NCBI GenBank assembly: GCA_035221665.1 | Contig: CM069133.1 | Span: forward strand, 44,702,001 to 44,766,000 | Direction: 5' to 3' | DNA: 64,000 nt | Origin: Okamejei kenojei | Lineage: Eukaryota | Shown: positions 12,250 through 56,865 of the stretch, in pieces | How the letters are laid out: each line of letters begins with the position of its first letter | Position numbering within the stretch: the first letter of the stretch is position 1 | Made by a program: the position numbers and the translations under genes | The notes under the pieces: generated by a model | Databases searched by the model: none | What the model saw: the letters and a program-made list of their open reading frames with translations, nothing else | What the model was told of the DNA's origin: nothing

Positions 12250-12575
12250 ATTGTTGGGTGTAAATTTTGCAGCATAGGGTGGAGATCTGAGCCAGAGGGC
12301 GACACCCTCATTGCATCTGCTAGTTCCACTCAGATTCAGCAAGGACGGGGACTGGGTGACTGAAATGCAATGTGTCAAAATGGACTTTGCCATTTGATGC
12401 CAGCTGACATTCTTGCAAAGTCTCTGGAGCCCTTTTACACTCTGTTTTAACCGCACAACTCAAGCAGCAAGGAGTCTTGGTCCCAGCGTGCCTGAGGGAT
12501 TTGAAGGCTCAATAAGAGAAGAGAATGTTTTTGATTTGCTTTTGCACTGCCTGTCTCCACTGATCATACGCATAT
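12250..12575 (+). pseudogene. Orphan, disabled paralog of the promoter region and signal-peptide exon of the Siglec-like gene
   Basis: Colinear with ~37545-37890. ATG at 12525 sits in the same gagaagagaATG context. There is a net 8-nt deletion and the donor gtaagt is replaced by atacgc. Confidence 0.8.
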
Positions 12576-12897
12576 TTTAATACAGAGCAGCAGTTGGTTT
12601 TCTGGCTGCTTCACTATAGGGTGAAACAAATAACTATGAGATGGACTGGGCTGTCCATGGCATGGAGCAAAATCAGTCTTTTGATGCTATGCTTAAAGTG
12701 AGAGGCAGACGTTCAAAAATGGAATAAGTGAACGGTGTCCGTTTATTCCCTCAGCAGTTGATGCCTGACCTGCTGAATTCTCCAGCACTTGTATTTAGTT
12801 TGATAAAAAAATTAATGATGGGTCAGTGTATGTGTGCTCGATGTTCCTCATTTCAATCTCCAACATGCCTCTTATTCCGTAATGTGGACTTGGGAAA

Positions 12898-27534: not shown

Positions 27535-27699
27535 TGTGGCAGGGGGATGGGTACAAGAGCAGAGAGGCAGGAGGTGTAAAATGAGGGTAGAAGCATTAGG
27601 TAGCAAGGTGAAAGGTAAAAGTGGCAGGCAGACAAAACCAGGGCAAAAATCAAAAAGGGCCACTTTTCAGCAAAATTGTATAAGGGGTAAATGCGTTGT

Positions 27700-37544: not shown

Positions 37545-37834
37545 TGTTGCTGGTGCATTTTGCAATGCACCACAGATGGCTCAGCAGACAGAGGGTGAAG
37601 CCCTTGTTGCTGCTGTCAGTTCCACTCAGATTCTGCAAAGACAAGGACTGGGTGATTGAAATGCAAAGTGGACTTGTCCATTTGAAGCTGTCTGACAATT
37701 CTTGAAGTCTTGAGCTCTTTTACACTCTATGTTAACTGTAAAATTCAGAAAACTACAGGAAACAGCAAGGAGTCTCGGTTCTACTCAGCCAGTGGAAAGA
37801 CATACGGCATTTGAAAGCTCAACGAGAGAAGAGA
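37545..37834 (+). promoter_or_regulatory. Putative promoter/5' UTR of the Siglec-like gene
   Basis: Unique sequence just upstream of the leader ATG, with blocks conserved in the paralog at 12250-12524 (agttccactcagatt, ggactgggtga.tgaaatgcaa, ttttacactct, cagcaaggagtct). Confidence 0.5.
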
Positions 37835-37883
37835 ATGCTGTTTATTTTGCTTTGTGTCTTTGCACTGCCTGTCACCGCTAATC
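37835..37883 (+). CDS. Siglec-like receptor exon 1: signal peptide MLFILLCVFALPVTAN (phase 1)
   Basis: agaATG start, hydrophobic 16 codons plus 1 nt, consensus donor gtaagt at 37884. Confidence 0.8.
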
Positions 37884-37891
37884 GTAAGTAT

Positions 37892-40800
37892 CCTTTTTTT
37901 TAAAAATATATTTATTAGAAGTACATTACATTTTAATGGTACCTTTTTACAGGTTCCCAGAATTATTAAAACATTATTTGTATAACTTCCTTTTTTTTTA
38001 AACATTTTTTTTAGAAAGAAATGAGAAAGAAAGTAGTGAAGTGTGAAGAATAGACTAGTGAGTGTAGAGTGAAGAAAGAAATGTGAGAAAGTAAAGCAGA
38101 AAGGAGATTCTCCCAAGCAACCCATCGATGTTATTTTTTTAATAATCTTAATCAATTCAGTCAAAACCAGAATTTTTTATTTTATGATGATATTACACCG
38201 CATGATTCCACTAGGGTCAATAAATGGAGACCAACTCATTAAGAATTGGTCTTTTTTTCTATTAGGAGGAGTCTCATTTCTTCCAAATGTGCCGTTTCCA
38301 ATATATTACCAATTCACATTTTGAGTGTTGGTATAGTAGCCTTTTTCCAAAATTTAAGTATGAGTTTTTTCGCTATTATTAAACCATAATTAAAAAATGA
38401 GATTTGGGATATATTTAATGTATTTACATCTCCAAAGATATTCATTTCCATGCTAGGTTCCATTTTTATCTTAAATAAACTAGTGAATATATCAAATATA
38501 TCACACCAAAAACTTTGAAGTTTTATGCAAGAAATGAAAGAGTGTGTAAGATTGGCATTTTGAGAAAGACATTTATCACAAATTGGTGAGATATTTGAAT
38601 AAAATTTATTCAACCTAACTTTTGAATAATATAGTCTGTGTAATATTTTAAATTGAATTAAATTATGTTTGGAGTTAATCGAACATTTATGTATATATAT
38701 CAAATACCTCTCCCATGTTTCTTTAGAAATTTTTATCATTAAATCTTTTTTCCAGTCTTCTCTAATTGCCTCTGTTGAAGGCAATTCTCTATTAAGAATA
38801 CTATTATATAGATATGATATTAATTTTTGTGAGTCCGCCTTAATATTCATTGCTTCTTCCAGTGGGTCTATCGTTATATTCTGTAATCTTGGTATATATT
38901 TTTTTATAAAGTCACATATCTGTAAATAATTAAAGTATTGGTTATTATTCAAATTAAATTTTGATTTTAATTGTTGAAATGATAATAAATTTGCCATTTC
39001 ATACATGTCACCCAACTTTTTAATTCCCAGTCTTTCCCATTGTCAATATGTTTTATCCATAATAGATGGTTTAAATACGGGTTATTCACTATTGGTGTTA
39101 ATGAAGATAAGTTTCTTAATTTTAAGTTTAACTTTATTTGTTTCCAAATTCGAATTATATCGTGTATAATTGGATTCTTCTTATATAATATATTATTCAT
39201 TTTATCGGGGAGAAGAGAATCGCTCCTAAATCATAAGGGAAACAATCCTCTTTTTCCATTCTTATCCATTCCATCTGTTGAGAAGAACAATCCAACTAAT
39301 AAATAATATTCTTAATATGCACTGCCTAATAATAATATAAAAAAATTAGGCAGTGCAAGTCCCCCTACATATTTAGGTTTACATAAATGATTTATTTTAA
39401 TTCTATGTGCTTTGTAGTCCATATAAAATTCGTAATATTAGACTCTAGTATAAAAAATATATATTTTGGTATATATATTGGTGTGGATTTAAATAAATAT
39501 AATATTTGTGGTAGCACTATCAGTTTTATAGCATTTATTCTGCCAATTAATGATAGTGATAGCGTTTTCCAAAATGTAATCAAAGTGTTCAATTTATTTA
39601 ACAGAGGACTAAAATTAGCATTAAATAATGATTTATATCTTCTGGTAACTTGAATACGTAAATACTTACATTTTTCCGTTGCAATTTTAAATGGAAATTT
39701 TAATAGATGATTCGCTTTCTGAGGATGTAATGACATAATTTCACTTTTATTCCAATTTATTCTATATCCAGAAAAGGAACCAAATTCCTCTATTACATTT
39801 AATATGTTCGGGATACTCGTTTCTGAATTTCTAATATATAAAGGTATATCATCCGCGTATAATGAAATTTTATTATTAGAGTCCTTAGAATTATATCCCT
39901 GAATATTCGGATGAGTTCTTATCCTTTCAGCCAATGGCTCTATCATAAGGGCAAATAGCAGGGTGATAAAACACATCCCTGCATATTGCCCCGTGATAGT
40001 TGAAATTTTTGAGACAACGTATTATTAGTTAATATTCTTGCTGTTGGTTTATTGAATAATAATTTTACCCATCTAATAAAATTATCTCCCATATTAAATT
40101 TTTGGAGTACTATGTATAAATACTGCCACACTACCTGATCAAATGCTTTTTCTGCGTCCAAAGATATAACTGATAAGTCTTCCTTTTCCCCTTTATGTGA
40201 ATACATTATATTATAAAGTCATCTCAAATTGTTAAATGATTGTCTTTTGGGTATAGAAACATAGAAACATAGAAATTAGGTGCAGGAGCAGGCCATTTGG
40301 CCCTTCGAGCCTGCACTGCCATTCAATATGATCATGGCTGATCATCCAACTCAGTATCCTGTACCTGCCTTCTCTCCATACCCCCTGATCCCTTCAGCCA
40401 CAAGGGCCACATCCAACTCCCTCTTAAATATGGCCAACGAAACTGGCCTCAACTACCTTCTGTGGCAGAGAATTCCACAGATTCACCACTCTCTGTGTGA
40501 AAAACGATTTTCTCATCTCAGTCCTAAAAGACTTCCCCCTTATCCTTAAACTGTGACACCTTGTCCTGGACTTCCCCAACATCGGGAACAATCTTCCTGC
40601 ATCTAGCCTGTCCAACCCCTTAAGAATTTTGTAAGTCTCTATGAGATCACCCCTCAATCTTCTAAATTCCAGCGAGTACAAGCCAAGTCTATCCAGTCTT
40701 TCTTCATATGGAAGTCGTTGCCATCCCAGGAATCAGTCTGGTGAACCTTCTGTGTACTCCCTCTATGGCAAGAATGTCTTTCCTCAGATTAGGTGACCAA

Positions 40801-43800
40801 AACTGTACGCAATACTCCAGGTGTGGCCTCACCAAGACCCTGTACAACTGCAGTAGTACCTCCCTGCTCTTGTACTCAAATCCTTTTGCTATGAATGCCA
40901 ACATACCATTCGCTTTCTTCACAGCCTGCTGCACCTGCATGCCTACTTTCAATGACTGGTGTACCATGACACCCAGGTCTCACTGCATCTCCCCTTTTCC
41001 TAATCGTTCACCATTCAAATAATAGTCTACCTTCCTGTTTTTGCCACCAAAGTGGATAACCTAACATTTATCCACATTATACTGCTTCTGCCATGCATTT
41101 GCCCACTCGCCCAGTCTATCCAAGTCATCCTGCAGCCTCCTAGCATTCTCCTCACAGCTATAAACCCCGTTTGGTCCTGGTTTATCTATTTATTAATATA
41201 TTTGCTCAATCTTCTTGCTAAAATCTTTGCTAAAATTTTTTGGTCTGTATTTAAAAGTGATATAGCTCTATACGAGCCCGGATCTTCTAGATCTTTATCT
41301 TTTTTTTGTATAAGGATAATTGTAGATTCTGCTAAAGTTTCTGGTAATTTCTTATCGGTAAAAGCATACCTGTATAATTTAAGTAATCGTGGGACCATTA
41401 ACTCCTGAAATCTTTTATAAAATTAAATTTAAAAACCATCAGGCCCTGGAGTCTTCCCATTTTTCAATTCTTTTATTGTTTCTCTTATTTCTTCACTTGT
41501 AATCTGGGCTCCTAATTCCTCTTGTTCTAAGATATCCAATTTTGGCAAGTTACACTTATCTTATTATGTTATAATTTTATTGTCTTCAATGTTAGTTTTA
41601 TATGTATATAAATTTTGATAAAATTGAGCAAACCTTTTGTTAATATCCTTAGGTAAAGTTAATAGTTCCCCGTTCTCTGATTTGATTTTACTAATTGTTT
41701 TTTCCTTTTCTTGTTCCTTCAATTGTCGTGCTAGAGGTTTATGTGGTTTATCCCCAAATACAAATTGTACTTGTTTTGTGATCTGAAATAATCTTATTGC
41801 TCTTGCCGATAATATTCAATTAAGTTTAAATTTCAGTAATGTGATCTTATTATGTTTATCTATGTTTGGGTCTTTTTTGTGTTTCCTAATTCTAATAATT
41901 TAATTTCCTTTTCTAACGTCCCTTGTTCTGTCCTGTTTTTTTTATTTAGAAAAACTTTGATACGAAATTATAACGTCCACAAATGAAATGCCTTAAAAGA
42001 TTCCCATAATAGAGATGGTGAAATCCCTGGAGTCTCATTTATTTTAAAAAAATGTTCATTTGTTGTTTTAAATACTCGTAACCTTGTGAGTCATTAGCTA
42101 TTTATGTGTTAAATCTCCAAAAAAACGTTTGTACCTGGCATACACTTAAAGTGAAAGTCAGCGGGGAGTGATCAGAAATAATACTGTTGTGTGTATTTAG
42201 GATTAATCGTGTATGGTATTAGTTTTGAGTCCACTAAAAAATAATCAATTCTTGAATAAGTTTTGTGTACTGATGAGTAAAACGAATATTCCCTTCCAGT
42301 TGGGTTAGTTATTCTCCATAAATCTATTATATTAGTGTTTTTTATATGTGTTTAAGAATTCACTCTAGACTTGGATTTTTGCACTACCCTTCCTAAATTT
42401 TGTTGATTTGTCTAAGTATGGATCTATAACACAATTAAAGTCCCCCCCTAGTATTACATTTTGAAAATTGTACTCATCTATTTGATCCATAATTTTCTTA
42501 AAAAATTGGGGATTATCAAAGTTTGGAGCGTAAATATTTATCAGGAGTCAGTGGAGTGCAATACATTCTCCTGCCACTATCGTGTATCCTTCCTTCTTTA
42601 TCAGATATTGTATTCTTTAATATATTAACGATATTACCTTTCCGAATAATAAAAGCCGTTCCTCTGGCTTTAGCAGTAAATGACGAATGATACATTTGGC
42701 CTATCCAGTTTGCCCTAAATCTCATCTGTGTTTGTAGTTTCGTATGCGTTTCTTGCAGAAAACGCTATATCCACCTTCAAAAGATTTTAAATGGGCCATA
42801 ATCTTGCCCCTTTTAATTGGATCATTCGCACCCTAAAATTTCAACTACAAAATGTGACTCCTCCATTCTTATTTTCCTTATTGTCCTGCATTATAAATAG
42901 GTTTTAATAATTTTACTTCATGTGGTGTAATTAGGTTCCTCAGACTTTTGGGTATGTGGGTATCATCCCACACTTCTGATGTTATTTTACCTCTCCTCCG
43001 TATATTGAACCTCTGTAATAAAAAGAGAAAGGTGTGTTGAAAAATAGTGATGAAAAAAAGAAAAATAGTTAATTGAGCCACATAAGAGTAAATGCAACAA
43101 CAACAACAACAAAACTCTTGATTTTAAGGTATCCAAAAGGTGACCCCTAAATAAAGAAGCTTTTTACAGCTTTTTATGCTAACATGTAGCGAAACGCCTA
43201 TGTGACTTTAACCTGTTTAAAACAGCGGGGATTGAACCTCCGAACTTTAGACTCTGCGTGGACGTGATTATTCATTGAGTTCAGCCACCCAGTAAATGGT
43301 TTTAGACCCTTTTACAACTAACAATGTTGCACCGTTTTCATCCAAATATATCTTAATATCCGGGAGATACATCTTAATATATCTAAGGAAAAAAAAAAAA
43401 AAGGTCTATTAATATCCTTAATGTTTCTCTTTTCTACCCCGATTTTAAACCTTCTATATTACTTGCTCGGTATCCCCGAGTCCTAGAATTAAAAAACATG
43501 AGAACACCTGCCCTGTACCTGTCCAATATACAGTATTCATTAGTACCCTTAATTAGCCAGCCTGTTTCAAGGGTTGGCATTTCTTATCTTAAATACAACC
43601 ATCTTCCAGCCCAAACCTCTGGAACTTTTCCAGATCATTAATGCCTCTTTCTTCCCACAGGTTTATGATGTTCTAATATTCTTATACCCCTTTTCATTAA
43701 TTATAATGTGTTAGTGTACATCCTAAATTGTATTTCATTTCTTTTCAACCAAATTAACCTTATCTATCTGTTAATAATAATAATCTCTATATGCCCCTTA

Positions 43801-45325
43801 TCCCCTGAATCCATTAGGTTAATACCTTGGTTCCTCATATTAACATTACTGTAATAGCATAACCATTAATTAGTGGATATATATTAATTAATTCTTTAAG
43901 TTTTATATAGTTAATTAATTCTTTACATTACATATATACTGTATTATAAAACATTTCTTAAGTCCATAATGTCCTTTGATTTTCTTTCAAATCTGATCGA
44001 GTTGTTTCAAAATAACTGTTCTTTCAGTATTTATTTCTCTTCTCCTTATCTGTTCAAGGTTGAAAACCAGGGCCTGTTCGCATTGCATACATATTCCTGA
44101 CAGATAAAGCCTGTCCTGGTTAATGTCTAGAGCATTCCATCGTCTTAATTACAGCACAGATTCCCATAGACATTTACTCATCCGCTTTTACTTCTGTTTT
44201 TTCTAATTTTCTTTAACAATTTCTTGTGCGTAATTAAATGCCAAATCCGGGTCCGTGAAGGCGCGTTGAATAGAGTTATAATTAATTTTCATTTTCGCGG
44301 GGAAACACTATTCGTATTTCACCTCTGATTTACTTTGCAGAATGCTGCTTACTCTTTTAAATTTATTTCTTTTTTCCAGTATTTCACGTGAGTAGTCTCT
44401 GTAGAATCTGACAGTTTTTCCATCAAATGTAAGCCTCTCCCACATGGTATCATCTTCATAAGTTTATCCAAACTTGAAATGTCCAAAAATTTCACAATAA
44501 TCTGTCTTGGGGGAGAATTTGTTTCTCTTCTGAAGCGACCTGAACCCATGTGCACACATCAATCCTTTGGGTTTTCCTTCAACTTAAAGACATCTTTGAG
44601 TATTTTAGTAACGAGGTTCAGTCATTAAAATTCCTAGCTCTTGCCCTTCCTTTACTCCTACAAACTGTCCTCAAGTTCTGTCTTCCTTGATCTAGCTTCA
44701 AAGTGTTGAATTTATCTGTCAATTTATTCAATTGCTCCCGATTAACCCCTTGTTCTTCTTTTTCTGGTCGATATTTCACGAGACATCTCACGTATTCAAT
44801 CTTCATATCTTCTATCAACTTTATCAACTCCCTTCATTCAATTCATCAAATTTCTTATTATAATCATTATCCATTCTCGCCAAATTACTGAGTCGTCTCC
44901 TCTGATCCAAATCCGACAGTTTTGCTCCAAAAAATTTCAAAATGTTCCTTTTGATTCAGACGCGCAGCAAAGCCCTCTGCTTTTTCTTGGAGAGGATTAA
45001 CCTCCTTTTAGATTAATTTGCTCTCAGTATCTTGTTATTTTAGTGAGCATTTTTGGGAGAATTCCTTGTAAGATCTTGGTAGATCTTTAGTAAGATTAGC
45101 TCGTTACTGTTTCTTCCCACTGCTTCATCTCTTTCTCTTTTTCGGTCCGTTTCGTCTCCCTTTTGTAGCCATTTCAGATTAGCTTGTTGAGAATTCAAAA
45201 TTCTTAGTCTGAAACTTTCAGTTGTTGTTTGGAGGGCTTGCCAAATCGTCTTCCAGCAGGAGTCTGATTGTGGGATTTCAGTCTGGATAGTGGAGCCAGC
45301 AGGGGTCTGATAGTGGAGCAGCACA
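37892..45325 (-). mobile_element. Near full-length fish-type L1 LINE, antisense in intron 1
   Basis: Poly(T) at ~37894. ORF2 motifs SYRAISLLNTDQKILAK, SLDAEKAFD, LYADD, CDKC...LTHSF; endonuclease remnants to ~42850; ORF1 remnants (PPRQIIVKFL) ~44180-45180. Many indels. Confidence 0.9.
40255..41157 (-). mobile_element. CR1 3' fragment nested in L1 RT
   Basis: Near-identical to ~29710-30610; L1 ORF2 continues on both sides. Confidence 0.95.
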
Positions 45326-45535
45326 GCCGGGAGAAGGGACCACTGTTAGTGTCCACAATCCCACTCTACCATTTTCACAAGCTCTCCACGTGGTGAGGGT
45401 TGACAAACAGCACAGCAACATCGCAGCTCAACCGCCTTCCACAAGGGGCAGGGAACCCAGGGAGTGGGCGCAAGCTCCTACATTGACTGTGGCCTCAGGA
45501 TCAGTCTTAACGTTACATTCTCTGTGTCTTCACAG

Positions 45536-45945
45536 GCTTGCAATGTCAGTGGTTGGGACATGGAGATACACCGGTCAAGGTGACGGGGAGTGAGGGTGGG
45601 GAAATAGCGCTGTGGTTCTGTACTTGCAAGTGCATCACCCTCACCATGAATACAAAGTACAACATTCAGCAGCTTCTGGTTTTTGAGCCGTGGAGAGGAT
45701 TCCAAGAAGAGCGGGGGTCCATAGGACACAAAATTATCTATCAAGCAACAAGTATTACAAAATGTGTCATTAATAAGAGAAACTCGCTACAAACCAATGG
45801 GGGTCCCGGCGGAAGATCGATGCTTCCATCATCATTAATCACTGAAAATACGGATACTAACAAGGCCTCATTTTCGTGTTGAGCTCTACAGAGCCAAACG
45901 GACAAAGTTTGGATGCCCAACATGGACTATCACAAGTATCATTGA
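45536..45945 (+). CDS. Siglec-like receptor V-set domain 1 (Siglec-15-like), multiple frameshifts
   Basis: Acceptor tctgtgtcttcacag. Frame-corrected reading WDMEIxPVKVTGSEG..SAVV..CK..HPHHEYK...RYKPMGVP..DASIIIN..DTNK..FRVEL parallels Siglec-15 WSMQVPPEVSAEAGDAAVLPCTFTHPHRHY...RFRLLGNP..DLSL...YFCRVEF (from memory). Donor not clean. Confidence 0.75.
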
Positions 45946-46966
45946 GGAATTATTTGTAACTGAATGGATTATTGTACTGTAAAACTAAGATTGCCTGTGA
46001 TTCCGATGTCACTGGCATCGCAGGACAATTGTCACGCTGTTGACTTGTTAGGTAACATCACTGGGAGATCATGTCCTTGATTGACCGCCTAAAATACAAC
46101 ACGTTGCACTAAACTGAATTTAACTCTATTCACCATCCCTTCAACCCACGTGACCCGCTGATCAACATCCTGGCTGTCGCTTTTGATAACCATGTTCACT
46201 CATACCTCCTCATTTCTGCCTGACCATGATGTACAGTCACTGTGGAAATGGGGTATGTCATTGCCACAACTGGCCTGCTGTTATAGTCACATATTATGTC
46301 TCCTCCAGTTAAGTTTCAGAATTGGTTATTGGTTTATTATTTGTCTATGCACTGAGATACAGTGACATTTTTCCGATGACTCTCCAGACAAATCATACCA
46401 TTTGAGGCACTAGAAATCTGCAGATGCTGAACCAGAGCAAAACACAAAGTGCTAAAGACACAGTGGGTCAAGCAACAACGTGGAGGAAACTGGACAAGGC
46501 AATTATCCGGTGGGATCCTTCAAACAGATGAGTATTAGGGAGAAAGATGGGATGGGGCAACGCTTGCCATGATAGGTGGATGGAGGGAGGAGAGTGTTTG
46601 GGGCACGGGGGAGGTGCCCATCAGATGGGTGGAGACAGTGATAATGGTGAGTGGTGAAAAGGAGACATAAAAGATGTCCAGACAAGGAAACAAAAAGTAA
46701 AGGCGAGGCAATGGAAGTAATGGGTCCAGGGGAGATGGCAGGGGAAAGACCTGTGATAGAAGGAACTATGGATTTGAGGATGAGAGATGAATACGGAGAA
46801 AAAAAGGAGCAGTGTGACAGGGATAATTGGAGCAAAGTGTGCACAGTGGGCCTGGTGGGGGTGGGGGGGGTGGGGGGGGGGGAGTGGGAGTTTTAACTTG
46901 AACTTTGAGAGTTCAGTGTTCAATACGGCCGGGTTGGCGGTTACTACTTCTCAAGCTAACTTCAAG

Positions 46967-47466
46967 NNNNNNNNNNNNNNNNNNNNNNNNNNNNNNNNNN
47001 NNNNNNNNNNNNNNNNNNNNNNNNNNNNNNNNNNNNNNNNNNNNNNNNNNNNNNNNNNNNNNNNNNNNNNNNNNNNNNNNNNNNNNNNNNNNNNNNNNNN
47101 NNNNNNNNNNNNNNNNNNNNNNNNNNNNNNNNNNNNNNNNNNNNNNNNNNNNNNNNNNNNNNNNNNNNNNNNNNNNNNNNNNNNNNNNNNNNNNNNNNNN
47201 NNNNNNNNNNNNNNNNNNNNNNNNNNNNNNNNNNNNNNNNNNNNNNNNNNNNNNNNNNNNNNNNNNNNNNNNNNNNNNNNNNNNNNNNNNNNNNNNNNNN
47301 NNNNNNNNNNNNNNNNNNNNNNNNNNNNNNNNNNNNNNNNNNNNNNNNNNNNNNNNNNNNNNNNNNNNNNNNNNNNNNNNNNNNNNNNNNNNNNNNNNNN
47401 NNNNNNNNNNNNNNNNNNNNNNNNNNNNNNNNNNNNNNNNNNNNNNNNNNNNNNNNNNNNNNNNNN
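46967..47466. other. Assembly gap (500 N)
   Basis: Run of N. Confidence 1.
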
Positions 47467-48160
47467 GTATTCCGTTGTATTTATGATTTGGATGAGGGGA
47501 TTGGAAGATTTGTGGCCAAGTTTGCGGATGATACGAAATAGGCGGAGGGAGCAGGTAGTGCAGAGAAAGCAGGGTCGTTCTGCAGAAGAACTTGGACGGA
47601 TAGGTTGGGTGAGTGGGCAGAGAAAGTGACGATGGGAAAAAGTGTGGAAAAGTGTGGGTCATGTATTTTTGTAATAGGATTAAAGGCGTTGTTGATTAAA
47701 TTCCTAAATGGGTGAGAGAATCCAGAATTCGGAGGTGCAAGGCGACTTGTGGAATGCTCGGGTGCGGATTCCCAAAAAAGTTAATCTGCGAGTCGATTCA
47801 GTTGTAAAAGAAAGCAACAAATGGGATGTGGAGGAGATGTTTCATTAGTGGGATAGTCTAAGACGAGAGATTTTGCCTCAGAATTAAAGGTACGTCCTTT
47901 TGGAAGAGATGGAGGAGGAATTTCTGTTGTCGGAGTGTGATGAATCTATTGGAATTCTTTGCCACAGACGGCTGTGGAGGCAAAGTCGGTGGATATATTT
48001 AAGGCAGAGATAAATCGATCCTGATTAGTGCGGGTGTCAGAGGTTATGAGAAGGCTGGAGAATGATTAGGAGAGATAGATCAGCCGCGATTGAATTGGCG
48101 GAGTGAGTAGCCTTGATGGGTCCGAATGGTCTAATTCTACTCCTATCACATATAATTGTA
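47467..48160 (+). mobile_element. CR1 3' fragment, indel-rich
   Basis: aagtttgcggatgatac (FADD) through to a CR1 3' UTR-like end. Confidence 0.85.
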
Positions 48161-48533
48161 TGAACGTGCCTCCCGTAGATGAGCTTTATGGGTGCAGACC
48201 CTAGACCCCCACCCCACCCAACCTGATTCAGCTACCACGCCTTTAGCATCTCCATCCTCCTCTTCCGGTTCCTCTCTTTCGAAGGTCAAAGCTCAATGGG
48301 AGCCATGAAGGCTCCATCTTGTCCAGACTAAGCTGATATGTCTTTAGTTCAGATTGGCCCTTAATAGAATACTGCAGGAGGTCAGGAATTAAAAAATAAA
48401 CAGATGGGATCAGAGTGGGAATGGGATGGAAAAATCAAGTCACCAAATGTGGATGAACTAGTGATAAATACCGTGTGGTTATTGTATTCATTACTAAATC
48501 ATATTCACACTTTTAAAACTCTTCTCTGTGCAG

Positions 48534-48893
48534 GTGATAAACGACAGAGCATACATGGTGATGGGTGGAGGGTGCGATCTGCACACTGCCCTTGCTCCTT
48601 CGTCCCTCGACAGGAATCCCCGCTCCATCACCATCAGCTGGATGAAGGGAATCCATCAAAATGGTTGTTGTCTTTCGTCACACTTTCCCGAACCAGAGCA
48701 CATCGCATTCCTGAAAATGTAAATATAGGGGATCGATATGAGATGCGTGGGAAACCTTACGCAGGAGACGCCTCCATCAGAGTGAGGCAACTCAAACTGG
48801 GTGACGGCAGCGATTACTCCTGTCACGTTTCTGTAGGAATTTCAACGGTTGATGACTGTGACTCAGGATGAGATGAAAAACTGCAGGTTGTGG
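48534..48893 (+). CDS. Siglec-like receptor V-set domain 2, frameshifted
   Basis: Acceptor ctctgtgcag, donor gtaagg. PCSFVP, ITISWMKG, RYEMRGKPYAGDASIRVRQLKLGDGSDYSCHV, DEMKLQVV. Confidence 0.88.
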
Positions 48894-49538
48894 GTAAGGA
48901 AAAAACGTAAAGTTATGCTGTAAAGATATTTCATATTGAACAACCTAAGAGGAATGAGCTCCCACTGACAGCGTAGACCCAGCACAGGAACAGCGGCTTT
49001 GGCCCGCATGTCTGTACCCAAACTGATGCTACGTTATCTCATCTACTGCAGGTGATACTTTTCTTCCATTACCTGCATTTAAAAAAGCCTCTAAATACTC
49101 CACTATCATAGGCGCCTCCCCTCCCACCCTAGCAGTATTTTCCTGGCACCCACCACCCTTATGTAAACAATATCTTTCCCCAAAATATCTCTTTCAATCT
49201 TTTCCCTCTGTCCTTAATCACAAATGCCGTCTATTCATTGACATTTCTTTGCCATTAGGCATAGGATATCTGACTCTCTGTCCTATCCATGTCTTAAATT
49301 TTTATAAAACTTTCGACAGTCCAGAAAAACAGTTCAAATATGTCCGACCTTTTTCTTATCACTAATACCTCTAATCCAGGCAGCATTCTGGTAAACCTCT
49401 TCTGAACCCTTTGCAAAGTTTCCACATCCTTCCTGTAATGGGTGAGAACTGCACATAAAACAGAATGCAATTTAATCCCAAGTGTCGTAACTAAAGTTAT
49501 ATAGAGCTACAACATGACTTCATGACTTGTATTCAGTA

Positions 49539-49745
49539 GATAGACACTAAATGCTGGAGTAACTCACCGGGGACAGGCAGCATCTCTGGAGAGAAGGAAT
49601 GGATGACGTTTCAGATCGAGTATCTTCTTCTTGACCCGAAACATGACCCATCCTTTCTCTCCAGAGATGCTGCCTACCCAGCTGAGTTACTCCAGCTTTT
49701 TGTGTCCATTTTCAGTTTTAACCAGCATCTGCAGTTCCTTCCTAC
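49539..49745. mobile_element. Inverted pair of Penelope pLTR fragments forming a palindrome
   Basis: gctggagtaactca...ggcagcatctctggagaga mirrored by tctctccagagatgctgcc...tgagttactccagc; centre ~49628. Confidence 0.8.
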
Positions 49746-50317
49746 ACTTCTTGTATTCAGTATCTTGGACCAATGAAAGCAAGCATACTGTACACGTTTT
49801 TAACATGTTGCCATTTTCAGAGAGTTATGGAATTGGATCCCAATATTTTTTTCTGTACATTAGTAATTTTAAGGGGTCTTGCCCTTGTCCTTGTTCTACT
49901 TTCCACTTGCATTCAAACCTCTCAAAGTCAACACTTCACACGTGTTCGGATCAAACTCCATCTGGCCATTTCTCTGCCTATATCTGTATTTAGATTAAAA
50001 AATTGCAGTATCTTTCTACAGTTCTACAGTTATCTGCCTTCCTCATGATAGTCTTGCACTTTCAATAAGCACACTACAGACCATGCGTGGGTTTTTGATA
50101 TTTGAGCTGCCACTTATGTGGACTGTACATTTGCAATTGACTTCACTTTCTCATGTTTGAACAGAGGTGAACGCCACTGTCTCATCTCTAATGTCACTGT
50201 TGACAGCAGTCTTGTGCCATCTCCAGTGATATTGTCATCAGCCTATGGTTATGGTGGTATGGGTCAGGTGATATTGACTTCTGAGGCAGTTCTGGCCAGT
50301 TCTTGTACAAACAATAA

Positions 50318-50708
50318 AGGGCCTGTCCCTCTTTGGTGACAACTGAAGACAACTGAAGACTTCTCTTGATGCCGGTAGCTGTCGCCGGTTGACGTAGGTT
50401 GACTTAGGTAGTCGCCAATTGAATTCACCGAAGTCAGCACCGGCGACAACCTACGTTATCCTGGCAACAACCTACGACAGCACCTACGTCAGGAGAAGAC
50501 AAGCTACGAGAAGCCCAAGGTTGCCAAGAGTCGCCGAAAAGTTTAGACCATTTCAAAATCCAGCGGTGATCAGAAAAACGTTACGACTCTTTAGGCGACT
50601 TGAGGAGACAACTCACAACCATACAGATGATACCCCAGGCGACCGTGTGGCGACTGCCCAGTCGCATGTAGTGGCCTAAAAAAAAAATCGCGTAAGTTGG
50701 ACAGGCCT
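50318..50708. mobile_element. PIF/Harbinger-type MITE
   Basis: TIR ggcctgtcc...ggacaggcc flanked by taa/tta; internal gtcgcc/ggcgac repeats. Confidence 0.7.
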
Positions 50709-50939
50709 TAAGCAAGTTATTGAAATTGTTGCTTTAAATGTTAGCACAAAGGCTTCATGCTGCCCAGACAGAAGATGAGGTGCTTGAGATTGGGCCTCGT
50801 TAGAACAGTGCAGGAGGTCTGAGACAGACAGAATCAGAGCGGTAGTGGGATGGAGAATCAAAGTCACAGGCATGGATGATGTAATTTTTATAAACCATGT
50901 GGGAATTAGATTGTTAAATACAGCTTTTGTCTTTACAAG

Positions 50940-51303
50940 ATGGAAAGAAGAAGACATCCATGGTGATTGGGAAGAGAAGAGATTCATCCATACTGCCTGC
51001 TCCTTCAGCCCCTTGAACAAGAATACCAGCCCCATCACTGTCCGCTGGATGAAGGGGAATCCACGGGAGGAGTCCCACAGTTTTTAATCACACCCACCCC
51101 CACTCTGTGAACCGTCCCTACACTGTCACTGTAAAGGGAGGAGGTCGATATGAGCTGGTGGGAAAACTAGACCAGGGAGACGCCTCTATCAGAGTGAAGG
51201 AGCTCAGAGTGAACGACAGCAGTGACTATTTCTGTCACGTTTGGGTCAGGAATTCCACACAGGAGACGGTGACATCAGGATGAGATGAAACTGGAGGTTG
51301 TGG
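50940..51303 (+). CDS. Siglec-like receptor V-set domain 3 (duplicate of domain 2), with a few frameshifts
   Basis: Acceptor gtctttacaag, donor gtaagg. CSFSP, ITVRWMKG, RYELVGKLDQGDASIRVKELRVNDSSDYFCHVWV, DEMKLEVV. Confidence 0.9.
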
Positions 51304-51967
51304 GTAAGGAAGATCTGTCTGTGTTGTGCTGTGGTGAACGATAAAATCACATTAACAACTGTAAGAGGGACATGAGATCCACTGACAGCTGGAGCCGAGA
51401 TCGGCCCACTCCATTGTAGGTTCCAAACCCTTGCCCTGGGCTTCCCTTGCTCAGCACTGCCCCCAGTGGTTGGACAACAGTGCTGATTCCAGCCAGAATT
51501 GCACGGAGCTCCCTGAAGCAGGATCAGAGATTCAGAACCACATTCATCTGCTGAACCTCCAGTCCCTGTGTCTGTGACATGGTCTGTGTTGCAAAGATCC
51601 ACAGACTGCCCTGGGGTATTTACATCCGTCTCTTTTCATTCACATTGAGTCCGGGAACCTGTATGTTCTCTCACTGAATATTACACAGACAGTACAGCAC
51701 AGGAACAGGCCCTTTGGCCCGCAATATCTGTGCAGAACATAATGGTACTGTAAGTTAAACTAATATCATCTGCCAACACATGATCCATATCCCTCCATTT
51801 TCTGTAGATCCATGTGCTTCTTAAAAACACTATCATATCTACAAATATTTCACTGCAGTCTCCTAGGGTGTGTTCTTCCAATCCCCATTCTGAAGGACTC
51901 TATCTGCACACACACCATCAACAGTGATTAATTCAATTAATTTAATTTAATTTCTTCCTTCTCCAAG

Positions 51968-52338
51968 TCCCAGCCACCATCCTGAAGCTGTCTGTTGTGA
52001 GCGACAATGTAACTGGAGAACACACCCTCGTGTGCTGTGCTGAAGGGAAGCCCCCTGCAAACATCACGTGGATCGACCCAGGGAACAGCGCACTGCCCGG
52101 GAACAGTAGTGAGATGACAGTCACGCATGATCCAGAGAAACTACTGACTGTGGGAAAGATGCTTCACCCCAGACTGCCAGGGAAATACACGTGTGTGGCT
52201 GTGAATGAGTACCAGAGAGACACGCGTGAGATCCGCCTATTCGAGGATGGACTAAGAGCGTTGGCCATTCGAACTGCCATTTATGCGGTCTATTTTCTTA
52301 TAATTGGCTTCACATTCTGTTGGTTGAAGAGAGGGTGA
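51968..52338 (+). CDS. Siglec-like receptor C2-set Ig domain plus transmembrane helix (intact frame)
   Basis: Acceptor ttcttccttctccaag, phase 1. VPATILKLSV...LVCCAEGKPPANITW...GKYTCVAVNEY resembles the Siglec-15 C2 domain; TM LAIRTAIYAVYFLIIGFTFCWL followed by KR. Confidence 0.92.
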
Positions 52339-53385
52339 ACGTCGCCATCTCAGCTCCATTGCTGGGTGTCAACAGGAGGGATGCTGCACCTCCACTGGCA
52401 GTGGCAGGTTCTGGTGATGTGGATCAGGCAGTGTAACTTCGGAGAGAAACAATGCTACATTCCCCCAGCTATGACCGTGTGTCTGTGGGGTACATGGAGC
52501 TGTCCTCACGTCAGTCCGACTCAGCGGCTCCTCCCTCAGTAGTGTATCCCATACATTTGCAACTGCATTGCTGCTGATTCCTGCATCCGCATAGAACTCA
52601 AATTTCACATGCCTCTTAGCTGTCTTCCTTCATCCTAAACCATGGCTTAATCTCTACCTTAGCTGACAGAGGCCTTGGCAGCTTTGAATCGTTTTCATGA
52701 ACTTCTTTTTGCTAATTCCTTCCCCAAGGCAGAGCAAGAATAGATTTTCCCTGATCCTCATTTCCCACCCACTAGTCTCTGCATTCAATGGATCAACCTT
52801 TATAGCTTCTGTTACCATCGGTGCACGTACACCAACAGACACATCTTCCAGCTGCCTACACTTTCAGCATCCTGAAGGGTCCATTCCCTTTGCGACTCCA
52901 TCATCTGCTCTTCCATGCCATTCAACCATTTACTCAGAACAGTGCATGGTGTAATTTTCCAGGTTAGACTCTGCAATCAACAATATCGGTTTGCTCACTT
53001 TCTCTGTCTGTGTCAAGGCTGGTCAGCTGTGTTGTAGATAATCCATCTGCATTATGAACTTGTTATCCTCTCTCTACGGGCACGGCCTGATCTGTGGCCA
53101 TCTCCTGTAGCTCTGGCTTCCATTTGCAGTTTCTACGTGTTCTCTTTCTAAATGCTCAGATAACTTTGTCAATCATTTATTACTATGGAAACCAGACATC
53201 TCCCTATAAGACATTCCTTTTTTTGCTGTCCCTCTCTCTCTCTATCTCACTCTTTCTGCACCAACAATCTTTTTTATTGTCTCAGCTGTTCAATCAGAAG
53301 CACAAAACTCTTTCTCTCTGCAAAGATGCCACCTGACCCGTTGAGTATCCTCTGCACTCTGGGGAGACATTCCTTTTCCTTGCAG

Positions 53386-53420
53386 ATCACAGGTGTCCCC
53401 TGCATTATGGAGCGTTGCCT
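53386..53420 (+). CDS. Candidate cytoplasmic exon (DHRCPLHYGALP if phase 1)
   Basis: Acceptor ccttttccttgcag, donor gtaagc, LxYxxL motif. Phase does not match the available TM donor by 1 nt. Confidence 0.4.
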
Positions 53421-53522
53421 GTAAGCTGAAAACCGCATAATATTTTTTTCGCACTAATTCTAAGAGTGCAAATTTTATTCTGCATCTCAAATTTTTCACT
53501 GGTGATTTGTGAATTCTGCAAG

Positions 53523-53684
53523 GGAGAATTTCCATTACCGGAACATCCGGAATATGGGCTTTACTCAAATTGGACTGGTGGTTGGGTTCAAGGATTGGGC
53601 ACGTCTTCTAACATGAGACGAGATCTCCTGGTAAAGAGTGATGACTACATTGACGAATCTGGTATCCAGTTCACTTGTGTCTGA
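53523..53684 (+). CDS. Candidate terminal cytoplasmic exon (GEFPLPEHPEYGLYSNW...TCV*)
   Basis: Phase-0 compatible with the preceding candidate exon; Tyr-containing open frame; weak acceptor. Confidence 0.3.
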   Translation, partial: GEFPLPEHPEYGLYSNWTGGWVQGLGTSSNMRRDLLVKSDDYIDESGIQFTCV

Positions 53685-55391
53685 AGCCAGTGTGCTAAAC
53701 TTTAATTAAGGCACAAAGGTGAAATGGCGGTTGGCTAAAATAGTTTCAAAATGAAAGAAAATGCCGACAGTAATGTTGTGAAGATTATTTATAGAGGATT
53801 GGAGATTGGAAGACAGAAGTAAACATCTTAAAAAATTATGAGGACAGAATTGATGGAGAAAATTGGTAAATATAAAAGGGATAAAAGGAGCTTCTGCAAG
53901 TATAAAAAAAGGAACAGAGTATCCAAAGCAAACAATGGATGAAAGCACCAAAAGTACAGCAGATACGCTGTCTGACGATACAAAGACAGGTGGCTTAGCA
54001 AGTGATGAGGACACAATGGGCCGGCACAGACATATAGATGGTTTAAGTGAGAGGGGAAAAAAATAGCTGAATTAGTATGATGGGGGGGAAATGTACCCTG
54101 TAATGTTACATTAAAACATCCTTACTTTTATACACTCATCTTGTGCAATAAAACCAGCATTCCATTTGTCTTTACAACTGCTTACAATACCTGCACGCAA
54201 GTCTCTTGTGTTTCACATGCACATACCCAATTTTAGGGGAAAATGAAATGGCAAGTTATTATTTGATTGGTAGGTGAATACAAACCATTTCCTAACTGTC
54301 TTCCACATATCTTAACACCATCACCCTCATTCTACGGCCCACTGGTTCCTATTAGATTTCATTCCCCCAATATCAGTGCTTGAATTTTGCATACCTACCT
54401 CAATGTGGTATTTGATTAAAGATCTTCTGAACTTGCAAACACACTGCACCCACACATATTTTCCTACCAATTACATACATAGAAAAAAAAACTCCCAGCA
54501 GGGTTGTCGAACCTTGAATTAAAAAAAATAGCCCCAGTACAGGAAGCATGTGGAAGCTCTTTGGAGAGGGTGCAGAAAAGGGTTACCAGGATTAGAAAGT
54601 ATGAGCTATGAGAAGATGTTAGGACATACTTGGATTGTTTTCTCTGGAGAGTTGGATATTGAGGGAAAATCTGATAGAAGTATAAAAAATTATGAGAGGC
54701 AGAGATTAGGTCAACAGTTAAAACCTTTTCCCCAGGTAAAAATGACTAAGACTAGAGGGTATCGCTTTAATACGAGGGGCAGGTTTTTTTCTACATAGAG
54801 TGATGGAGCCTGGAATGCCCTGCCGGGTTTAGTGGAATCAGATACAATAGGCCATCCAAGAGGCAATTAGATAGACACGTAGATATGCAGGGAAGGGGGA
54901 TATGTGGATCACATGCAGACAAAAGAGGTTAGTTTACCTTGCCATCAAATTTGGTTGGGACATGATGGGCTGAAGAGCTTGTTCCTGTGCTGTACTGTTC
55001 CTATCTTCAGTATAATCAAATTAATTTTATCTAATCCCTTAAAACTTTCAAAGCGTGCTGTTATCACATGTATAGATTCCAGCAAAATACATGCTAATTG
55101 TGTGAGGCTAACTGGTGTGTAGTTTGTTTATTTCTCTCAAACACCATTTGTTGCATTTGGCACTTGCCAACCTTCAGGAAACGTTGCAGAAGATGTGAAA
55201 TTTGGGGCCATTGCAACCAGTGCATTTTGCGGTGACTGGCAAGTGGCAGTGGCAAGGGAGACGTGAGTGTGGAGGGATGAGCGCACCTGGGTGCAGGGGC
55301 AAAGTGGTCTCTTGTCAAGGCAGAAATGGGAGGTGACATGAAGATAGACCATGGGTGGGCATCGCGTTGAAGTTGGTGGAAATATCATAGA

Positions 55392-55861
55392 TTATTACCT
55401 ATACGAGGTAGTTTTACCGGGCAATATTAGTTCGTATTTTGACAGGTCCAAAAACGCACAGTTTCCGGCGGGCAATATTACTTGGTATTTTTCTTCTTCC
55501 GGGTTTCGCCATTGACTTTACGTTGAAAAACTGCGGTCAATAACAAAGATGAAATATTACATCCGGCATACATCCGGGACACGAACCCGGCCAAAGTTCA
55601 CAGCGAAGAATCAGCTCACGGCATCTAAACAAACATGGCAGCCTCCAGCAGTGCGAGATTCGCGTCTCTTGACGACGACGGAATTATTTTAATTTACGTG
55701 CGGATAGGTAATAATTATAATATTGACTGTCTTCTTTCGGGAGACACCAGGAATATTGCCCGCACTGAAATCATATTGCCCTCGTCTTCGACTCGGGCAA
55801 TATGATTTCAGTTTGGGCAATATTCCTGGTGTCTCCCTCAAGGCCAGTCAATATTATATTA
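55392..55861 (+). mobile_element. Single-copy Crypton-like 470-bp element at the paralogous site
   Basis: Same flanks (catagatta / aatgttcacgtgg) as the dimer at 1097-2036. Confidence 0.6.
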
Positions 55862-56124
55862 ATGTTCACGTGGATGTGGAGGCTGGTGGGGTAAAAGATA
55901 AGGGCCAGTGGAACTCTAAACCTGTTCTGCCTGGGGGAAGGGAAGGGGGGGAGCTGCACGAATGGAGGAGACACAGGTGAGGGCATCATCCACAACTGTA
56001 GGGTGTTGAGGAGTGTGGGGGGCAACCGCATTTCCTCTAAAAGGAGGACATCCCAGATCTCCTAAAGTGGAAATCACCCATCTTGAAATCATCTCAAGAA
56101 GAGGCTTTCCACTCCCGGAGATCA

Positions 56125-56865
56125 CAATCAATCAATCACAATAATACTTTATTAGCCAAGTATGTTTTGCAACATACGAGGAATTTCATTTATGAAGTCA
56201 ATCATACAAATAAAAAGCAAAGGGACACACAAAATACATTTTAACATAAACATCCACCACAGTGACTCCTCCGCATTCCTCACTGTGATGGAAGGCGAAA
56301 AAAAGTTAAATCTCTTCCCTTATTTGCTCTCCCGCGGTTCGGGGCCTCGAGTTCTCCGTTGATGGAATGATCTTGAGTCGTGTAGCTGGCATCATTTGGG
56401 GCCCCGCATCATCAGCTCCTGCGTTGGGGGGATGTCAGTTCCCCCGCGCCAGTGATCGGACCCCCTCGGGGCTGGTCGAACCTCTGCATCATTGGAGCTC
56501 CCGACCCGGCCTCTCCCGAGACTGCAAGCTCGATGGTAAACTCCGCAGGCCGCGACTGGAGCGATCCCAGGCAAGGGTTCAGCTTCGATGTTAAGTCCAC
56601 ACCCCACAGAGGGGCTCCAAAGTCAGTCTGATGAGTTCTCCAGCTCCATTGATGTTAGGCCGCAGAGCGACCGGAGATGCAACCCGGAAAACATCGCATC
56701 TCCGGTGAGGTAAGAAACTAAGAGAAAAAGTTTCCCCCTCCCCCCCTCCCCCTCCCCCCACATGAAACAAACCGGGGAACATTTACACAAACTTTTAAAA
56801 CACACTAAAAATGTTAAAAAGGATGGAAGAACGGACAAGACTCTTGGTGAGGCTGCCAATCATGC
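56125..56865 (-). mobile_element. Non-autonomous Rex1-type retroelement (paralog of 2302-3030)
   Basis: Same position in the duplication, same termini. Confidence 0.7.

Follow-up and report, generated by a model that had tools for sequence, protein, structure and literature searches.

Does a locus with three V-set exons ahead of a single C2-set exon belong with Siglec-15, and can it make a receptor? A single sialic-acid-binding V domain at the N terminus defines the Siglecs. Among them Siglec-15 counts as the conserved V-C2 member, present throughout vertebrates, and in mammals a Lys in its transmembrane (TM) helix pairs with DAP12/DAP10. In Siglec-15 an N-terminal V-set domain and a single C2-set domain make up the ectodomain, and R143 of the human protein, next to the F-strand Cys, binds the carboxylate of sialic acid (PMC10264397). 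This plan of one V and one C2 does not describe the locus considered here, found in a window of 64,000 nucleotides from Okamejei kenojei (contig CM069133.1; the window is the whole stretch of DNA that was analysed). Three V exons precede the C2 exon in the window, and two to four V-set stretches (Pfam) do so in its relatives.

The features of the locus are collected in Table 1. The first-pass annotation had described five phase-1-compatible exons (leader, three V-set and C2+TM), broken up by an L1, a gap and frameshifts. DNA and alignments agree with this: all five exons lie on the forward strand, all exon boundaries are phase 1, the positions are close to those proposed, the L1 has RVT_1 matches, the gap is a run of N and the frameshifts are present in the written sequence. 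The exons of the proposed span are sound, but its end at 53684 lies 1.3 kb past the last family match, and the ORF at 53466-53684 matches neither the family nor Pfam.

Table 1. Features of the locus (positions in the window).
Feature	Position	Strand	Remarks
Decayed second copy of the family's 5'UTR/leader exon	12284..12585	+	8-nt deletion in signal peptide; donor GT lost
Leader exon including 5'UTR	37750..37883	+	ATG at 37835; 16 codons + 1 base; intact
L1-type LINE in intron 1	38300..45330	-	RVT_1 matches at 39395-40206; ORF pieces
Fragment of another LINE nested in the intron-1 L1	40253-41158	.	92% identical to 29708-30614
V1, Va-type (Siglec-15-type) V-set exon	45536..45942	+	acceptor AG at 45534-35; heavily broken
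Assembly gap, 500 N, in the V1-V2 interval	46967..47466	.	right flank begins with a LINE fragment
V2, Vb-type V-set exon, YSCHV motif	48534..48893	+	acceptor cag/GT and donor G/GTAAGG both intact
Relic of TM end and cytoplasmic tail, older Vb-C2-TM cassette	50100..50339	+	without C2 part
V3, Vb-type V-set exon, YFCHV motif	50940..51303	+	splice sites intact
C2-set domain and TM helix with Arg	51968..52338	+	splice sites intact; 0 frameshifts
Former short cytoplasmic tail	52339..52411	+	now 3' of stop codon

The window exons were searched one by one, and the only joining was a local check of the V3+C2 frame with the differences of an RNA contig (X1, see below) applied. Pfam recognizes a V-set domain in the V3 piece (E 6.4e-07, 30.0 bits, above the gathering score of 26) and in the V2 piece (E 2.7e-04, 21.5 bits, below it). 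It also finds I-set (E 1.9e-07), Ig_3 (E 5.7e-07) and C2-set_2 matches in the C2+TM exon. V1 has no Pfam match and no tblastn or Pfam tie to V2 or V3; it was identified solely via frameshift-aware alignment to the first V domain of relatives. That alignment, of a kind that the first-pass annotation had proposed, also assigned V2, V3 and C2+TM to family relatives. The leader has a donor GTAAGT at 37884, as read from the DNA, and is identical at 39/41 positions to the read-through translation of Amblyraja radiata model P0007 and at 81% to residues 10-52 of P0174. No V exons lie downstream of the second leader copy.

To which family do these exons belong? PDB and Pfam searches with single window exons were set aside because they gave generic Ig matches only (titin, MuSK, CD4, antibodies), as was a protein-atlas look-up of the C2+TM exon, which gave unspecific Ig clusters. 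Against human Siglec-15 (7zoz) the C2+TM exon alone reaches only E 0.006. Therefore, the assignment rests on the relatives of this exon, which are 81-88% identical to it. The full-length relative P0019 has human Siglec-15 as its best PDB match (7zoz, E 2.6e-24), with V, C2 and TM aligned in one stretch, and most members are named Siglec-15 in RefSeq. On these comparisons the locus is a member of a Siglec-15-derived multigene family of cartilaginous fish. The kinship with Siglec-15 put forward in the first-pass annotation is borne out by both the names and the structure match. Its elasmobranch-specific lineage is not, as Callorhinchus also carries the family. Nor is the family unannotated. It is already named in public annotation, with skate members that have up to four V domains, and dozens of RefSeq models bear the Siglec-15 name; yet a literature search found no paper on a Siglec-15-derived multi-V family of cartilaginous fish.

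The V exons are of two kinds. In a domain-wise tree, another proposed check, V1 falls within a clade Va and V2 and V3 within a clade Vb, the two separating at 100/99. V1 joins Amblyraja Va (98/94), with a terminal branch of 0.91. V2 forms a clade with Amblyraja V2-type domains (100/99) and V3 is sister to the fourth domain of P0012 (99/96), so that domains 3 and 4 of Amblyraja are the neighbours of V2 and V3. The V domain of the plain V-C2 Siglec-15 models that lamnid sharks also have (P0147, P0161) groups with Va (100/99). This clade beside Va suggests that the multi-V genes may be paralogues of SIGLEC15. Because jackhmmer profiles built for Va and for Vb drifted together and gave some domains the wrong label, the tree and the Cys-Arg/Cys-His motif were used instead.

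This motif marks both the likeness to Siglec-15 and the departure from it. Family Va keeps Cys-Arg at the place of C142-R143. Cys-Arg-Val is present in Va of Amblyraja, Heptranchias and Callorhinchus and absent from the two Mobula Va domains, and V1 of the window retains the Arg-Val-Glu-Leu codons but has lost its Cys codon and its reading frame. In V2 and V3 the motif is Cys-His-Val; the Vb His, aligned to human R143, takes the place of the sialic-acid Arg. Siglec-15 and the family share an N-terminal V-set domain, one C2-set domain and a single TM. However, in the family the N-terminal V and the C2 are separated by one to three additional V-set domains (Vb; in the chimaera also Va). The TM of the window copy has an Arg in its outer third, near the outer end, and no Lys, whereas some paralogues keep a Siglec-15-like Lys (P0167, Lys then a Leu run).

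Can several V domains be joined in one protein? Pfam finds four V-set stretches and a C2 in both P0012 (skate) and P0155 (Callorhinchus), and the Callorhinchus isoforms P0156 and P0155 have three or four V, differing by whole V exons. Models of Amblyraja and Rhinoraja read Va-Vb-Vb-Vb-C2. Among the overlapping skate models, P0174 joins leader, Va, Vb and V2 type, P0172 joins Va, Vb and V2 type, P0163 joins V2 type, V3 type, C2 and TM, and P0162 joins Vb, V3 type, C2 and TM. The exon types and their order are those of the window (Va, Vb, V2-type, V3-type, C2, Arg-TM, short tail), at 75-88% identity per domain. After frame correction, identity to A. radiata P0012 is 75-76% for V2 (against its third V) and 88% for V3 (against its fourth); C2+TM is 86% identical to Rhinoraja longicauda P0002. 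A multi-V ectodomain is plausible because the models of both genera join Va-Vb-Vb-Vb-C2. The three V domains of the first-pass annotation fall into two kinds; the multi-V plan itself holds for skate and chimaera models. The relatives also differ from the window copy, having open frames where it has at least 19 frameshifts, and a first Vb exon of which the window has no visible copy. These models are automatic and partly truncated or merged. Splicing of V2 to V3 has automatic gene models as its only basis, and A. radiata P0007 plainly reads through into the next gene.

The missing Vb exon draws attention to the gap. The nearest family matches end at 45979 on its left and start at 48521 on its right, and no coding match was found within ~1 kb on either side. 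The gap sits in non-coding sequence, so the question of whether the exons are in frame across it does not arise; ORFs that span it are artefacts of X translation. In the models of relatives one more Vb exon lies between the Va/V1 and the V2-type exon. It was sought in the visible gap flanks and not found, and its position would coincide with the gap.

A relic between V2 and V3, newly recognised here, bears on how the array arose. Residues 131-186 of P0009 match 50106-50270 (59% identity, E 9e-13, tblastn), residues 220-259 of P0002 match as well, and the relic can be aligned without a break in frame. The DNA of 50100-50189 is ~72% identical to 52267-52357, and Asp residues lie within the former TM helix. 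In addition, 48348-48972 matches 50784-51389, a tandem likeness. A C2 remnant was sought between V2 and the relic and none was found. The relic of TM and tail shows that V2 and V3 probably began as separate Vb-C2-TM cassettes, which implies that the V array would have grown by duplication of such a cassette.

As written, the window copy cannot encode a protein. Frameshift-aware alignment gives 8-9 frameshifts in V1, 5-11 in V2, 3 in V3, 0 in C2+TM and 3 in the tail, counts that are robust to the penalty setting. Those of V3 are exactly three single-base shifts (near 50995, 51074 and 51274). Right after the TM a stop (TGA at 52336) results from one extra G relative to relatives, an indel written at 52333-35, and the tail has two further frameshifts against R. 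longicauda P0002. V1 fares worst. Joined to the leader in phase 1 it meets a stop at 45880, its canonical donor GT is replaced, and it is 48-54% identical to Amblyraja Va, as against 64-71% between intact Va domains of Amblyraja and Rhinoraja. Pending a check of the reads, these many frameshifts require that the locus, although a recognisable member of a publicly named family, be handled as either a pseudogene or a poorly assembled stretch.

What if the gene is intact in the animal? The chances are evenly balanced that the window holds a decaying member of a birth-and-death array, with V3 and C2+TM, on the leading reading, as the part most recently constrained or gene-converted. The other reading is that the gene is alive and that the assembly consensus is in error at most or all of the single-base frameshifts, owing to low-quality contig ends beside the gap or by collapsed near-identical paralogues. 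Its product would then be leader-(Va)-(Vb)-Vb-Vb-C2-TM(Arg)-short tail, or at least leader-Vb-C2-TM. This is a serious possibility, with the balance of probability against it. In V2, V3 and the tail indels far exceed substitutions, nonsense substitutions were not found, and extra bases outnumber missing ones by ~2:1. Frame-corrected V3 (88%) and V2 (75-76%) are as near to Amblyraja as intact Rhinoraja domains are (80-86% and 75-78%), and the V3 end branch is normal (0.059 vs 0.064 for its Amblyraja sister). So few substitutions beside 3-11 indels per exon speak against decay, because neutral decay over that long should have added many. The splice sites of leader, V2, V3 and C2+TM are all intact. 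An intron contig from the X1 RNA run, which is from a related species, shows numerous indels of 1-3 nt relative to the window. Frameshift density and the ratio of gap openings to mismatches in alignments of non-coding repeats both peak within ~2 kb of the scaffold gap (ratio 0.44 at 47.9 kb, 0.24 at 49.3 kb, 0.10 at 51.7 kb and 0.04-0.19 elsewhere), the pattern expected from poor contig-end consensus or collapsed paralogues. However, the ratios are ordinary in repeats at 51.7 kb and 54-56 kb and in the LINEs at 26-30 and 40-41 kb. The LINE at 26.6-30.5 kb retains ORF pieces of 111-257 aa, which limits general indel noise in the window to at most ~0.2% per base; conserved single-copy genes were also sought in the window for error calibration, and only transposon ORFs were found, with no conserved genes flanking the locus. 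C2+TM is clean (0 frameshifts in 366 nt vs 6 in 439 nt for V3 and tail on either side; P ~0.007 at their rate), though it lies between the two. Single-base error does not explain the excess substitutions and lost donor of V1, and true relics occur within the same array: that of TM and tail, and the dead leader at 12.3 kb, which is distant from the gap.

A separate question is whether the exons, alive or dead, were ever one gene. The first-pass annotation had warned that neighbouring genes might be joined across the gap. The concern is real but not confined to the gap: with a TM and tail relic between V2 and V3, it applies there too. V1 (with a hidden or lost Vb), V2 with its former C2-TM, and V3-C2-TM might be neighbouring or nested units that were never co-spliced, and the multi-V RefSeq models of relatives might be merges over tandem copies. 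A. radiata P0007 does run from a C2 exon into the 5'UTR, leader and Va of the next gene, and R. longicauda P0002, P0004 and P0151 begin at a V3-type exon without a leader. Two X1 contigs are in keeping with this: one starts exactly at the first base of V3, and another runs from the end of V2 through the donor into the intron, unspliced. The first also shows the V3-to-C2 splice in a relative: it covers 50939-51303 with three compensating indels relative to the window V3, and continues into C2 at the predicted junction (51303 to 51970) in an open frame. Among the RNA runs listed, X2-X4, presumably from the species of the window itself, matched its repeats only, leaving the exons uncovered. Nevertheless, we regard such separate units as unlikely. 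Between the relic (end ~50340) and V3 (50940) there is neither a leader nor Va, so V3-C2-TM would have no signal peptide of its own. Concordant models of two species join V2-type to V3-type exons (P0012, P0163), P0174 and P0172 join Va to Vb to V2-type, the Callorhinchus isoforms vary by whole V exons, and the exons, all of phase 1, have good splice sites. Far less probable still is that the locus is not a relative of Siglec-15 and is instead an NKp30-like or B7-like (CD276) receptor, as its TM motif and V-C pattern might suggest. NKp30 (NCR3) is an activating receptor with a TM Arg and short tail, and in the window the Arg is followed by a YAV.FL-like run. CD276 (B7-H3) has V and C domains and a similar 'GDASIR...C' F-strand region, is the second-best PDB match of P0019 (6e-16) and, as 'CD276 antigen homolog', lends its name to some paralogues in RefSeq, where others are called 'CXADR-like'. 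However, the E value of Siglec-15 is lower than that of CD276 by eight orders of magnitude, in an alignment that runs unbroken through V, C2 and TM, and CD276 is built of repeated V-C pairs, not V-V-V-C, and its TM is uncharged. In NKp30 there is only one Ig domain, with no ectodomain similarity detected here, and NKp30 chains are absent from the 60 best PDB matches of P0019 and from the PDB matches listed for the window exons. The grouping of Va with the lamnid V domains and the Lys of P0167 also point to Siglec-15.

If the exons do belong to one Siglec-15-derived gene, how might it have arisen? The ground plan of the family would be leader, Va, Vb, C2 and TM, and skates would have gained Vb exons to give the Va-Vb-Vb-Vb-C2 of their models. 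In the window a tandem duplication, of period ~2.4 kb, may have copied a cassette made of a Vb exon and a C2+TM exon. The C2 of the upstream copy would then have been lost, with the dead relic of TM and tail retained, and the phase-1 V2 would thereby have been free to splice to V3. Such a gene would encode an activating-type receptor whose TM helix carries an Arg in its N-terminal portion and whose tail is very short, and this receptor would presumably recruit an ITAM adaptor. In other species, paralogues have ITIM-like tails or a TM Lys like that of Siglec-15, which gives the family the look of a paired-receptor set and not of a single conserved gene. Our proposal, offered tentatively and at a little short of an even chance, is that Siglec-15 became a paired-receptor family in cartilaginous fish. 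Its ectodomain would have grown by exon accretion, in which tandem Vb-C2-TM cassettes lost their inner C2-TM and the orphaned phase-1 V exons were spliced together, up to four V in all; the window would preserve an intermediate of this growth in the TM relic that lies between two V exons. The added V domains, with the sialic-acid Arg swapped for His, would bind something other than sialic acid. If this is true, a chondrichthyan expansion that includes V domains of two types, up to four of them in an array, and variants with Lys-TM, Arg-TM or ITIM would change the picture of a single conserved V-C2 Siglec-15, in the oldest jawed vertebrates. It would also be a tractable case of domain accretion through cassette duplication.

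A minor observation concerns a TGA shared by the ends of V2 and V3, considered as an inherited nonsense mutation and rejected. Both relatives and the X1 contig read Thr-Gln-Asp-Glu at this place, and the TGA is not in that frame.

The Siglec-15 relationship proposed in the first-pass annotation for the broken receptor gene holds at family level. Searches with single window exons gave generic Ig matches only, and close relatives were retrieved by a full-library search with the exon encoding the C2 domain and transmembrane helix (C2+TM). The family occurs in skates (Amblyraja radiata, Rhinoraja longicauda, Leucoraja erinacea), sawfish, stingrays and mantas, in the sharks Heptranchias and Heterodontus, and in the chimaera Callorhinchus. 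The best match of one full-length member, P0019, among solved structures is human Siglec-15 (E 2.6e-24, a single alignment spanning V, C2 and TM), followed by CD276 (6e-16). The family had also been called undescribed and specific to elasmobranchs. Neither label survives, since members are already annotated in public source records, mostly under the Siglec-15 name and otherwise as 'uncharacterized', 'CD276 antigen homolog' or 'CXADR-like', and Callorhinchus, a chimaera, carries it. No ectodomain relationship to NKp30 appeared; the predicted window TM has an Arg and then a Tyr-Ala-Val run.

The window is vertebrate and transposon-rich in composition, and its five exon-like pieces lie on the plus strand where they had been placed, as splice signals, Pfam domains, the intronic L1 and phase 1 at every junction confirm. 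The last exon gives I-set, Ig_3 and C2-set_2 matches in Pfam. V2 and V3 are 71% identical as DNA, a figure that takes in flanking intron (~190 nt upstream, ~80 nt downstream). The family matches nearest to the assembly gap are at 45979 and 48521, each ~1 kb off. No coding sequence adjoins the gap, so the frame across it is not an issue; ORFs that seem to span it are artefacts of X translation. Its right flank begins with a LINE fragment. The repeat at 47885-48081, 0.4-0.6 kb from the gap, is unusually indel-rich when paired with 8707-8907 (12 gap openings and 27 mismatches in 210 columns).

Features of the window, with frameshifts from frameshift-aware alignment to relatives and V-domain tree neighbours (support in brackets)
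Feature	Position	Strand	Description	Frameshifts	Tree neighbour
Decayed second copy of family promoter/5'UTR/leader exon	12284-12585	+	82% column identity to 37580-37900		
LINE family, copies 77-93% identical	26673-30516 (+), 31799-32281 (-), 33161-33790 (+), 40253-41158 (-)	see position			
First exon	ATG 37835	+	16 signal-peptide codons and one base, then GTAAGT		
L1-type LINE	intron 1	opposite to gene	RVT_1		
V1 exon	preceded by AG at 45534-35	+		8-9 in about 400 nt	Amblyraja Va (98/94)
Assembly gap	46967-47466		500 N; V1-V2 interval; single gap of window		
V2 exon	48534-48893	+	cag/GT ... G/GTAAGG; V-set (Pfam)	5-11 in 360 nt	third V of A. radiata P0012 (100/99)
Relic of TM end and cytoplasmic tail	50100-50339		between V2 and V3		
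V3 exon	50940-51303	+	V-set (Pfam)	exactly 3 at every penalty in 364 nt	sister to fourth V of P0012 (99/96)
C2+TM exon	start 51968 after AG; TGA 52336	+	C2-type domain, hydrophobic helix	0 in 366 nt	
Former tail				3 in 76 nt	

The ground plan of the family is a leader, a Siglec-15-type V domain (Va), a second V type (Vb), C2 and TM (P0019, P0046, P0083, P0167). In a maximum-likelihood tree, the 31 V domains included fall into two clades, each with 100/99 support, and the Va clade also takes in the V domain of lamnid shark 'Siglec-15' models that have a plain V-C2 layout. The F strand reads Cys-Arg-Val in most Va-clade domains and Cys-His-Val nearly always in Vb, and alignment to human Siglec-15 (PDB 7zoz) puts the Vb His at the position of R143. 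This Arg makes the salt bridge with sialic acid, and binding is lost when it is mutated (PMC10264397). In comparison with Siglec-15, only Va has kept the sialic-acid Arg, whereas the Vb domains that make up the extension are without it. Therefore, lectin activity of Vb cannot be assumed.

How did the extension arise? One clue is the relic between V2 and V3. It is ~72% identical as DNA to 52267-52357, and its protein matches the C-terminus of the family member P0009 (59% identity, E 9e-13) with no frameshift in the alignment, although Asp residues sit in its former helix. No C2 part was found upstream of it. A TM and tail remnant in this position makes the repeat unit a cassette of a Vb exon and a C2+TM exon, with a period of ~2.4 kb, and the upstream cassette has lost its terminal exon. 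No leader or Va lies between the relic and V3; without a signal peptide of its own, V3-C2-TM must depend on the leader at 37.8 kb. The relic thus supports domain accretion in which a cassette was duplicated and the terminal exon of the inner copy then died. It also means that the earlier worry about two units having been joined, which was directed at the gap between V1 and V2, applies between V2 and V3 too. Very high-copy short repeats occupy 49404-49771, 50324-50691, 51612-51816 and 53084-53267, with summed contig depth of up to ~4e5 in all four runs, which carry two species labels. One repeat, at 49220-49771, sits between V2 and the relic, in the stretch that lacks the C2 part.

A multi-V ectodomain is present in models of relatives, where the architecture is plausible but not proven. 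Pfam finds four V-set stretches and a C2 in P0012 (A. radiata) and P0155 (Callorhinchus). Overlapping models from two skate genera agree in their exon types and in the order of these: leader-Va-Vb-V2 type (P0174), Va-Vb-V2 type (P0172), Va-Vb-V2 type-V3 type-C2 (P0012), V2 type-V3 type-C2-TM (P0163) and Vb-V3 type-C2-TM (P0162). These skate models are automatic predictions, and one, P0007 of A. radiata, clearly continues into the next gene. Direct transcript support covers one junction, V3-C2. A 2306-nt contig from X1, an RNA run of another, related species, is ~96% identical, covers 50939-51303 and resumes at 51970-52249, splicing V3 to C2 exactly at the predicted GT..AG; the frame is open across both exons once the contig's listed differences are applied. 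This contig begins at V3's first base, and a second X1 contig extends from the end of V2 past the donor into intron sequence; co-splicing of V2 and V3 is therefore putative. The extra Vb exon that relatives carry between Va and the V2-type exon has no match in the visible sequence of the window and would fall within the gap-bearing interval. In Callorhinchus milii the array grew differently, by duplication of Va, not Vb. P0155 and P0156 are isoforms of LOC103188797 that differ by whole, nearly identical Va exons, with three before Vb-C2-TM-ITIM in isoform X1 and two in isoform X2.

Siglecs have a single V domain. The family's departure from this rule seems to be absent from the literature searched, as do its two types of V domain and the cassette mechanism. 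An intact copy would encode a type I membrane protein in which a long V array is combined with one C2 domain. Its predicted TM helix would carry an Arg in the outer part and its tail would have <30 residues, as in activating receptors whose signal passes through an ITAM adaptor. Paralogues of other species end differently: P0167 and P0083 have a Siglec-15-like TM Lys, and the tails of P0019 and P0155 contain several ITIM-like Tyr motifs. The family is thus composed like a set of paired receptors, some activating and some inhibitory.

The window copy itself is ordinary, being either broken or badly assembled. The exons of the first-pass annotation are real and its choice of relatives was correct, but the gene is not readable: as written, the locus codes for no receptor. 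Joined to the leader in phase 1, V1 is in the wrong frame and reaches a stop at 45880, its canonical donor GT is replaced, and one extra G places a stop directly behind the TM. Alignment to relatives revealed no nonsense substitutions in this copy.

Is this damage real? We put true decay at about an even chance, with V1 almost certainly affected and V3 and the tail least certainly. V1 is 48-54% identical to Amblyraja Va, compared with 64-71% when the intact Va of Amblyraja is set against that of Rhinoraja. The V1 end branch is 0.91, and the change that removed its donor is no single-base slip. Moreover, the array holds two undoubted relics, the TM relic and, 34 kb away from the gap, the dead copy of the leader exon (12284-12585). 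The LINE-family copies serve as a gauge of indel noise within the window. ORF pieces of 111-257 aa survive in the longest (26.6-30.5 kb), and gap/mismatch ratios are ordinary where repeats were aligned at 40-41, 51.7 and 54-56 kb, so general indel noise is low. C2+TM is clean, whereas the adjoining V3 and tail have six frameshifts in 439 nt (P ~0.007 at a uniform rate). Nevertheless, a consensus of collapsed paralogues could also leave the variable V exons noisy while the conserved C2+TM exon stays clean.

That a live gene was spoiled by consensus error is a possibility that we hold only tentatively. Once frame-corrected, V3 and V2 are 88% and 75-76% identical to the Amblyraja domains and so no more distant from them than intact Rhinoraja domains (80-86% and 75-78%), and with so few substitutions the indels are several-fold above the neutral-decay expectation. 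The V3 end branch is normal (0.059), all splice sites save the V1 donor are intact, and there are about twice as many extra bases as missing ones. In non-coding repeat alignments the gap-open/mismatch ratio also climbs towards the gap, from 0.10 (51.7 kb) through 0.24 (49.3 kb) to 0.44 (47.9 kb).

The second leader copy has an 8-nt deletion within the signal peptide and has lost its donor GT, and the next 25 kb contain neither a V nor a C2 exon. Positions 1-3612 and 54303-57451 form a direct repeat, 91-93% identical and ~54 kb apart. The Rhinoraja family models P0004 and P0165 continue into sequence that resembles window 1000-1092 and 3692-3901; therefore, a preceding family gene may have its downstream end at the window start, and the array may have a period of ~54 kb. 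A tandem repeat within 24000-27000 has copies (around 25647-26012) with many gaps and no mismatches, and it is enclosed by a region of strong G-over-C skew (0.35-0.39) at 18000-30000.
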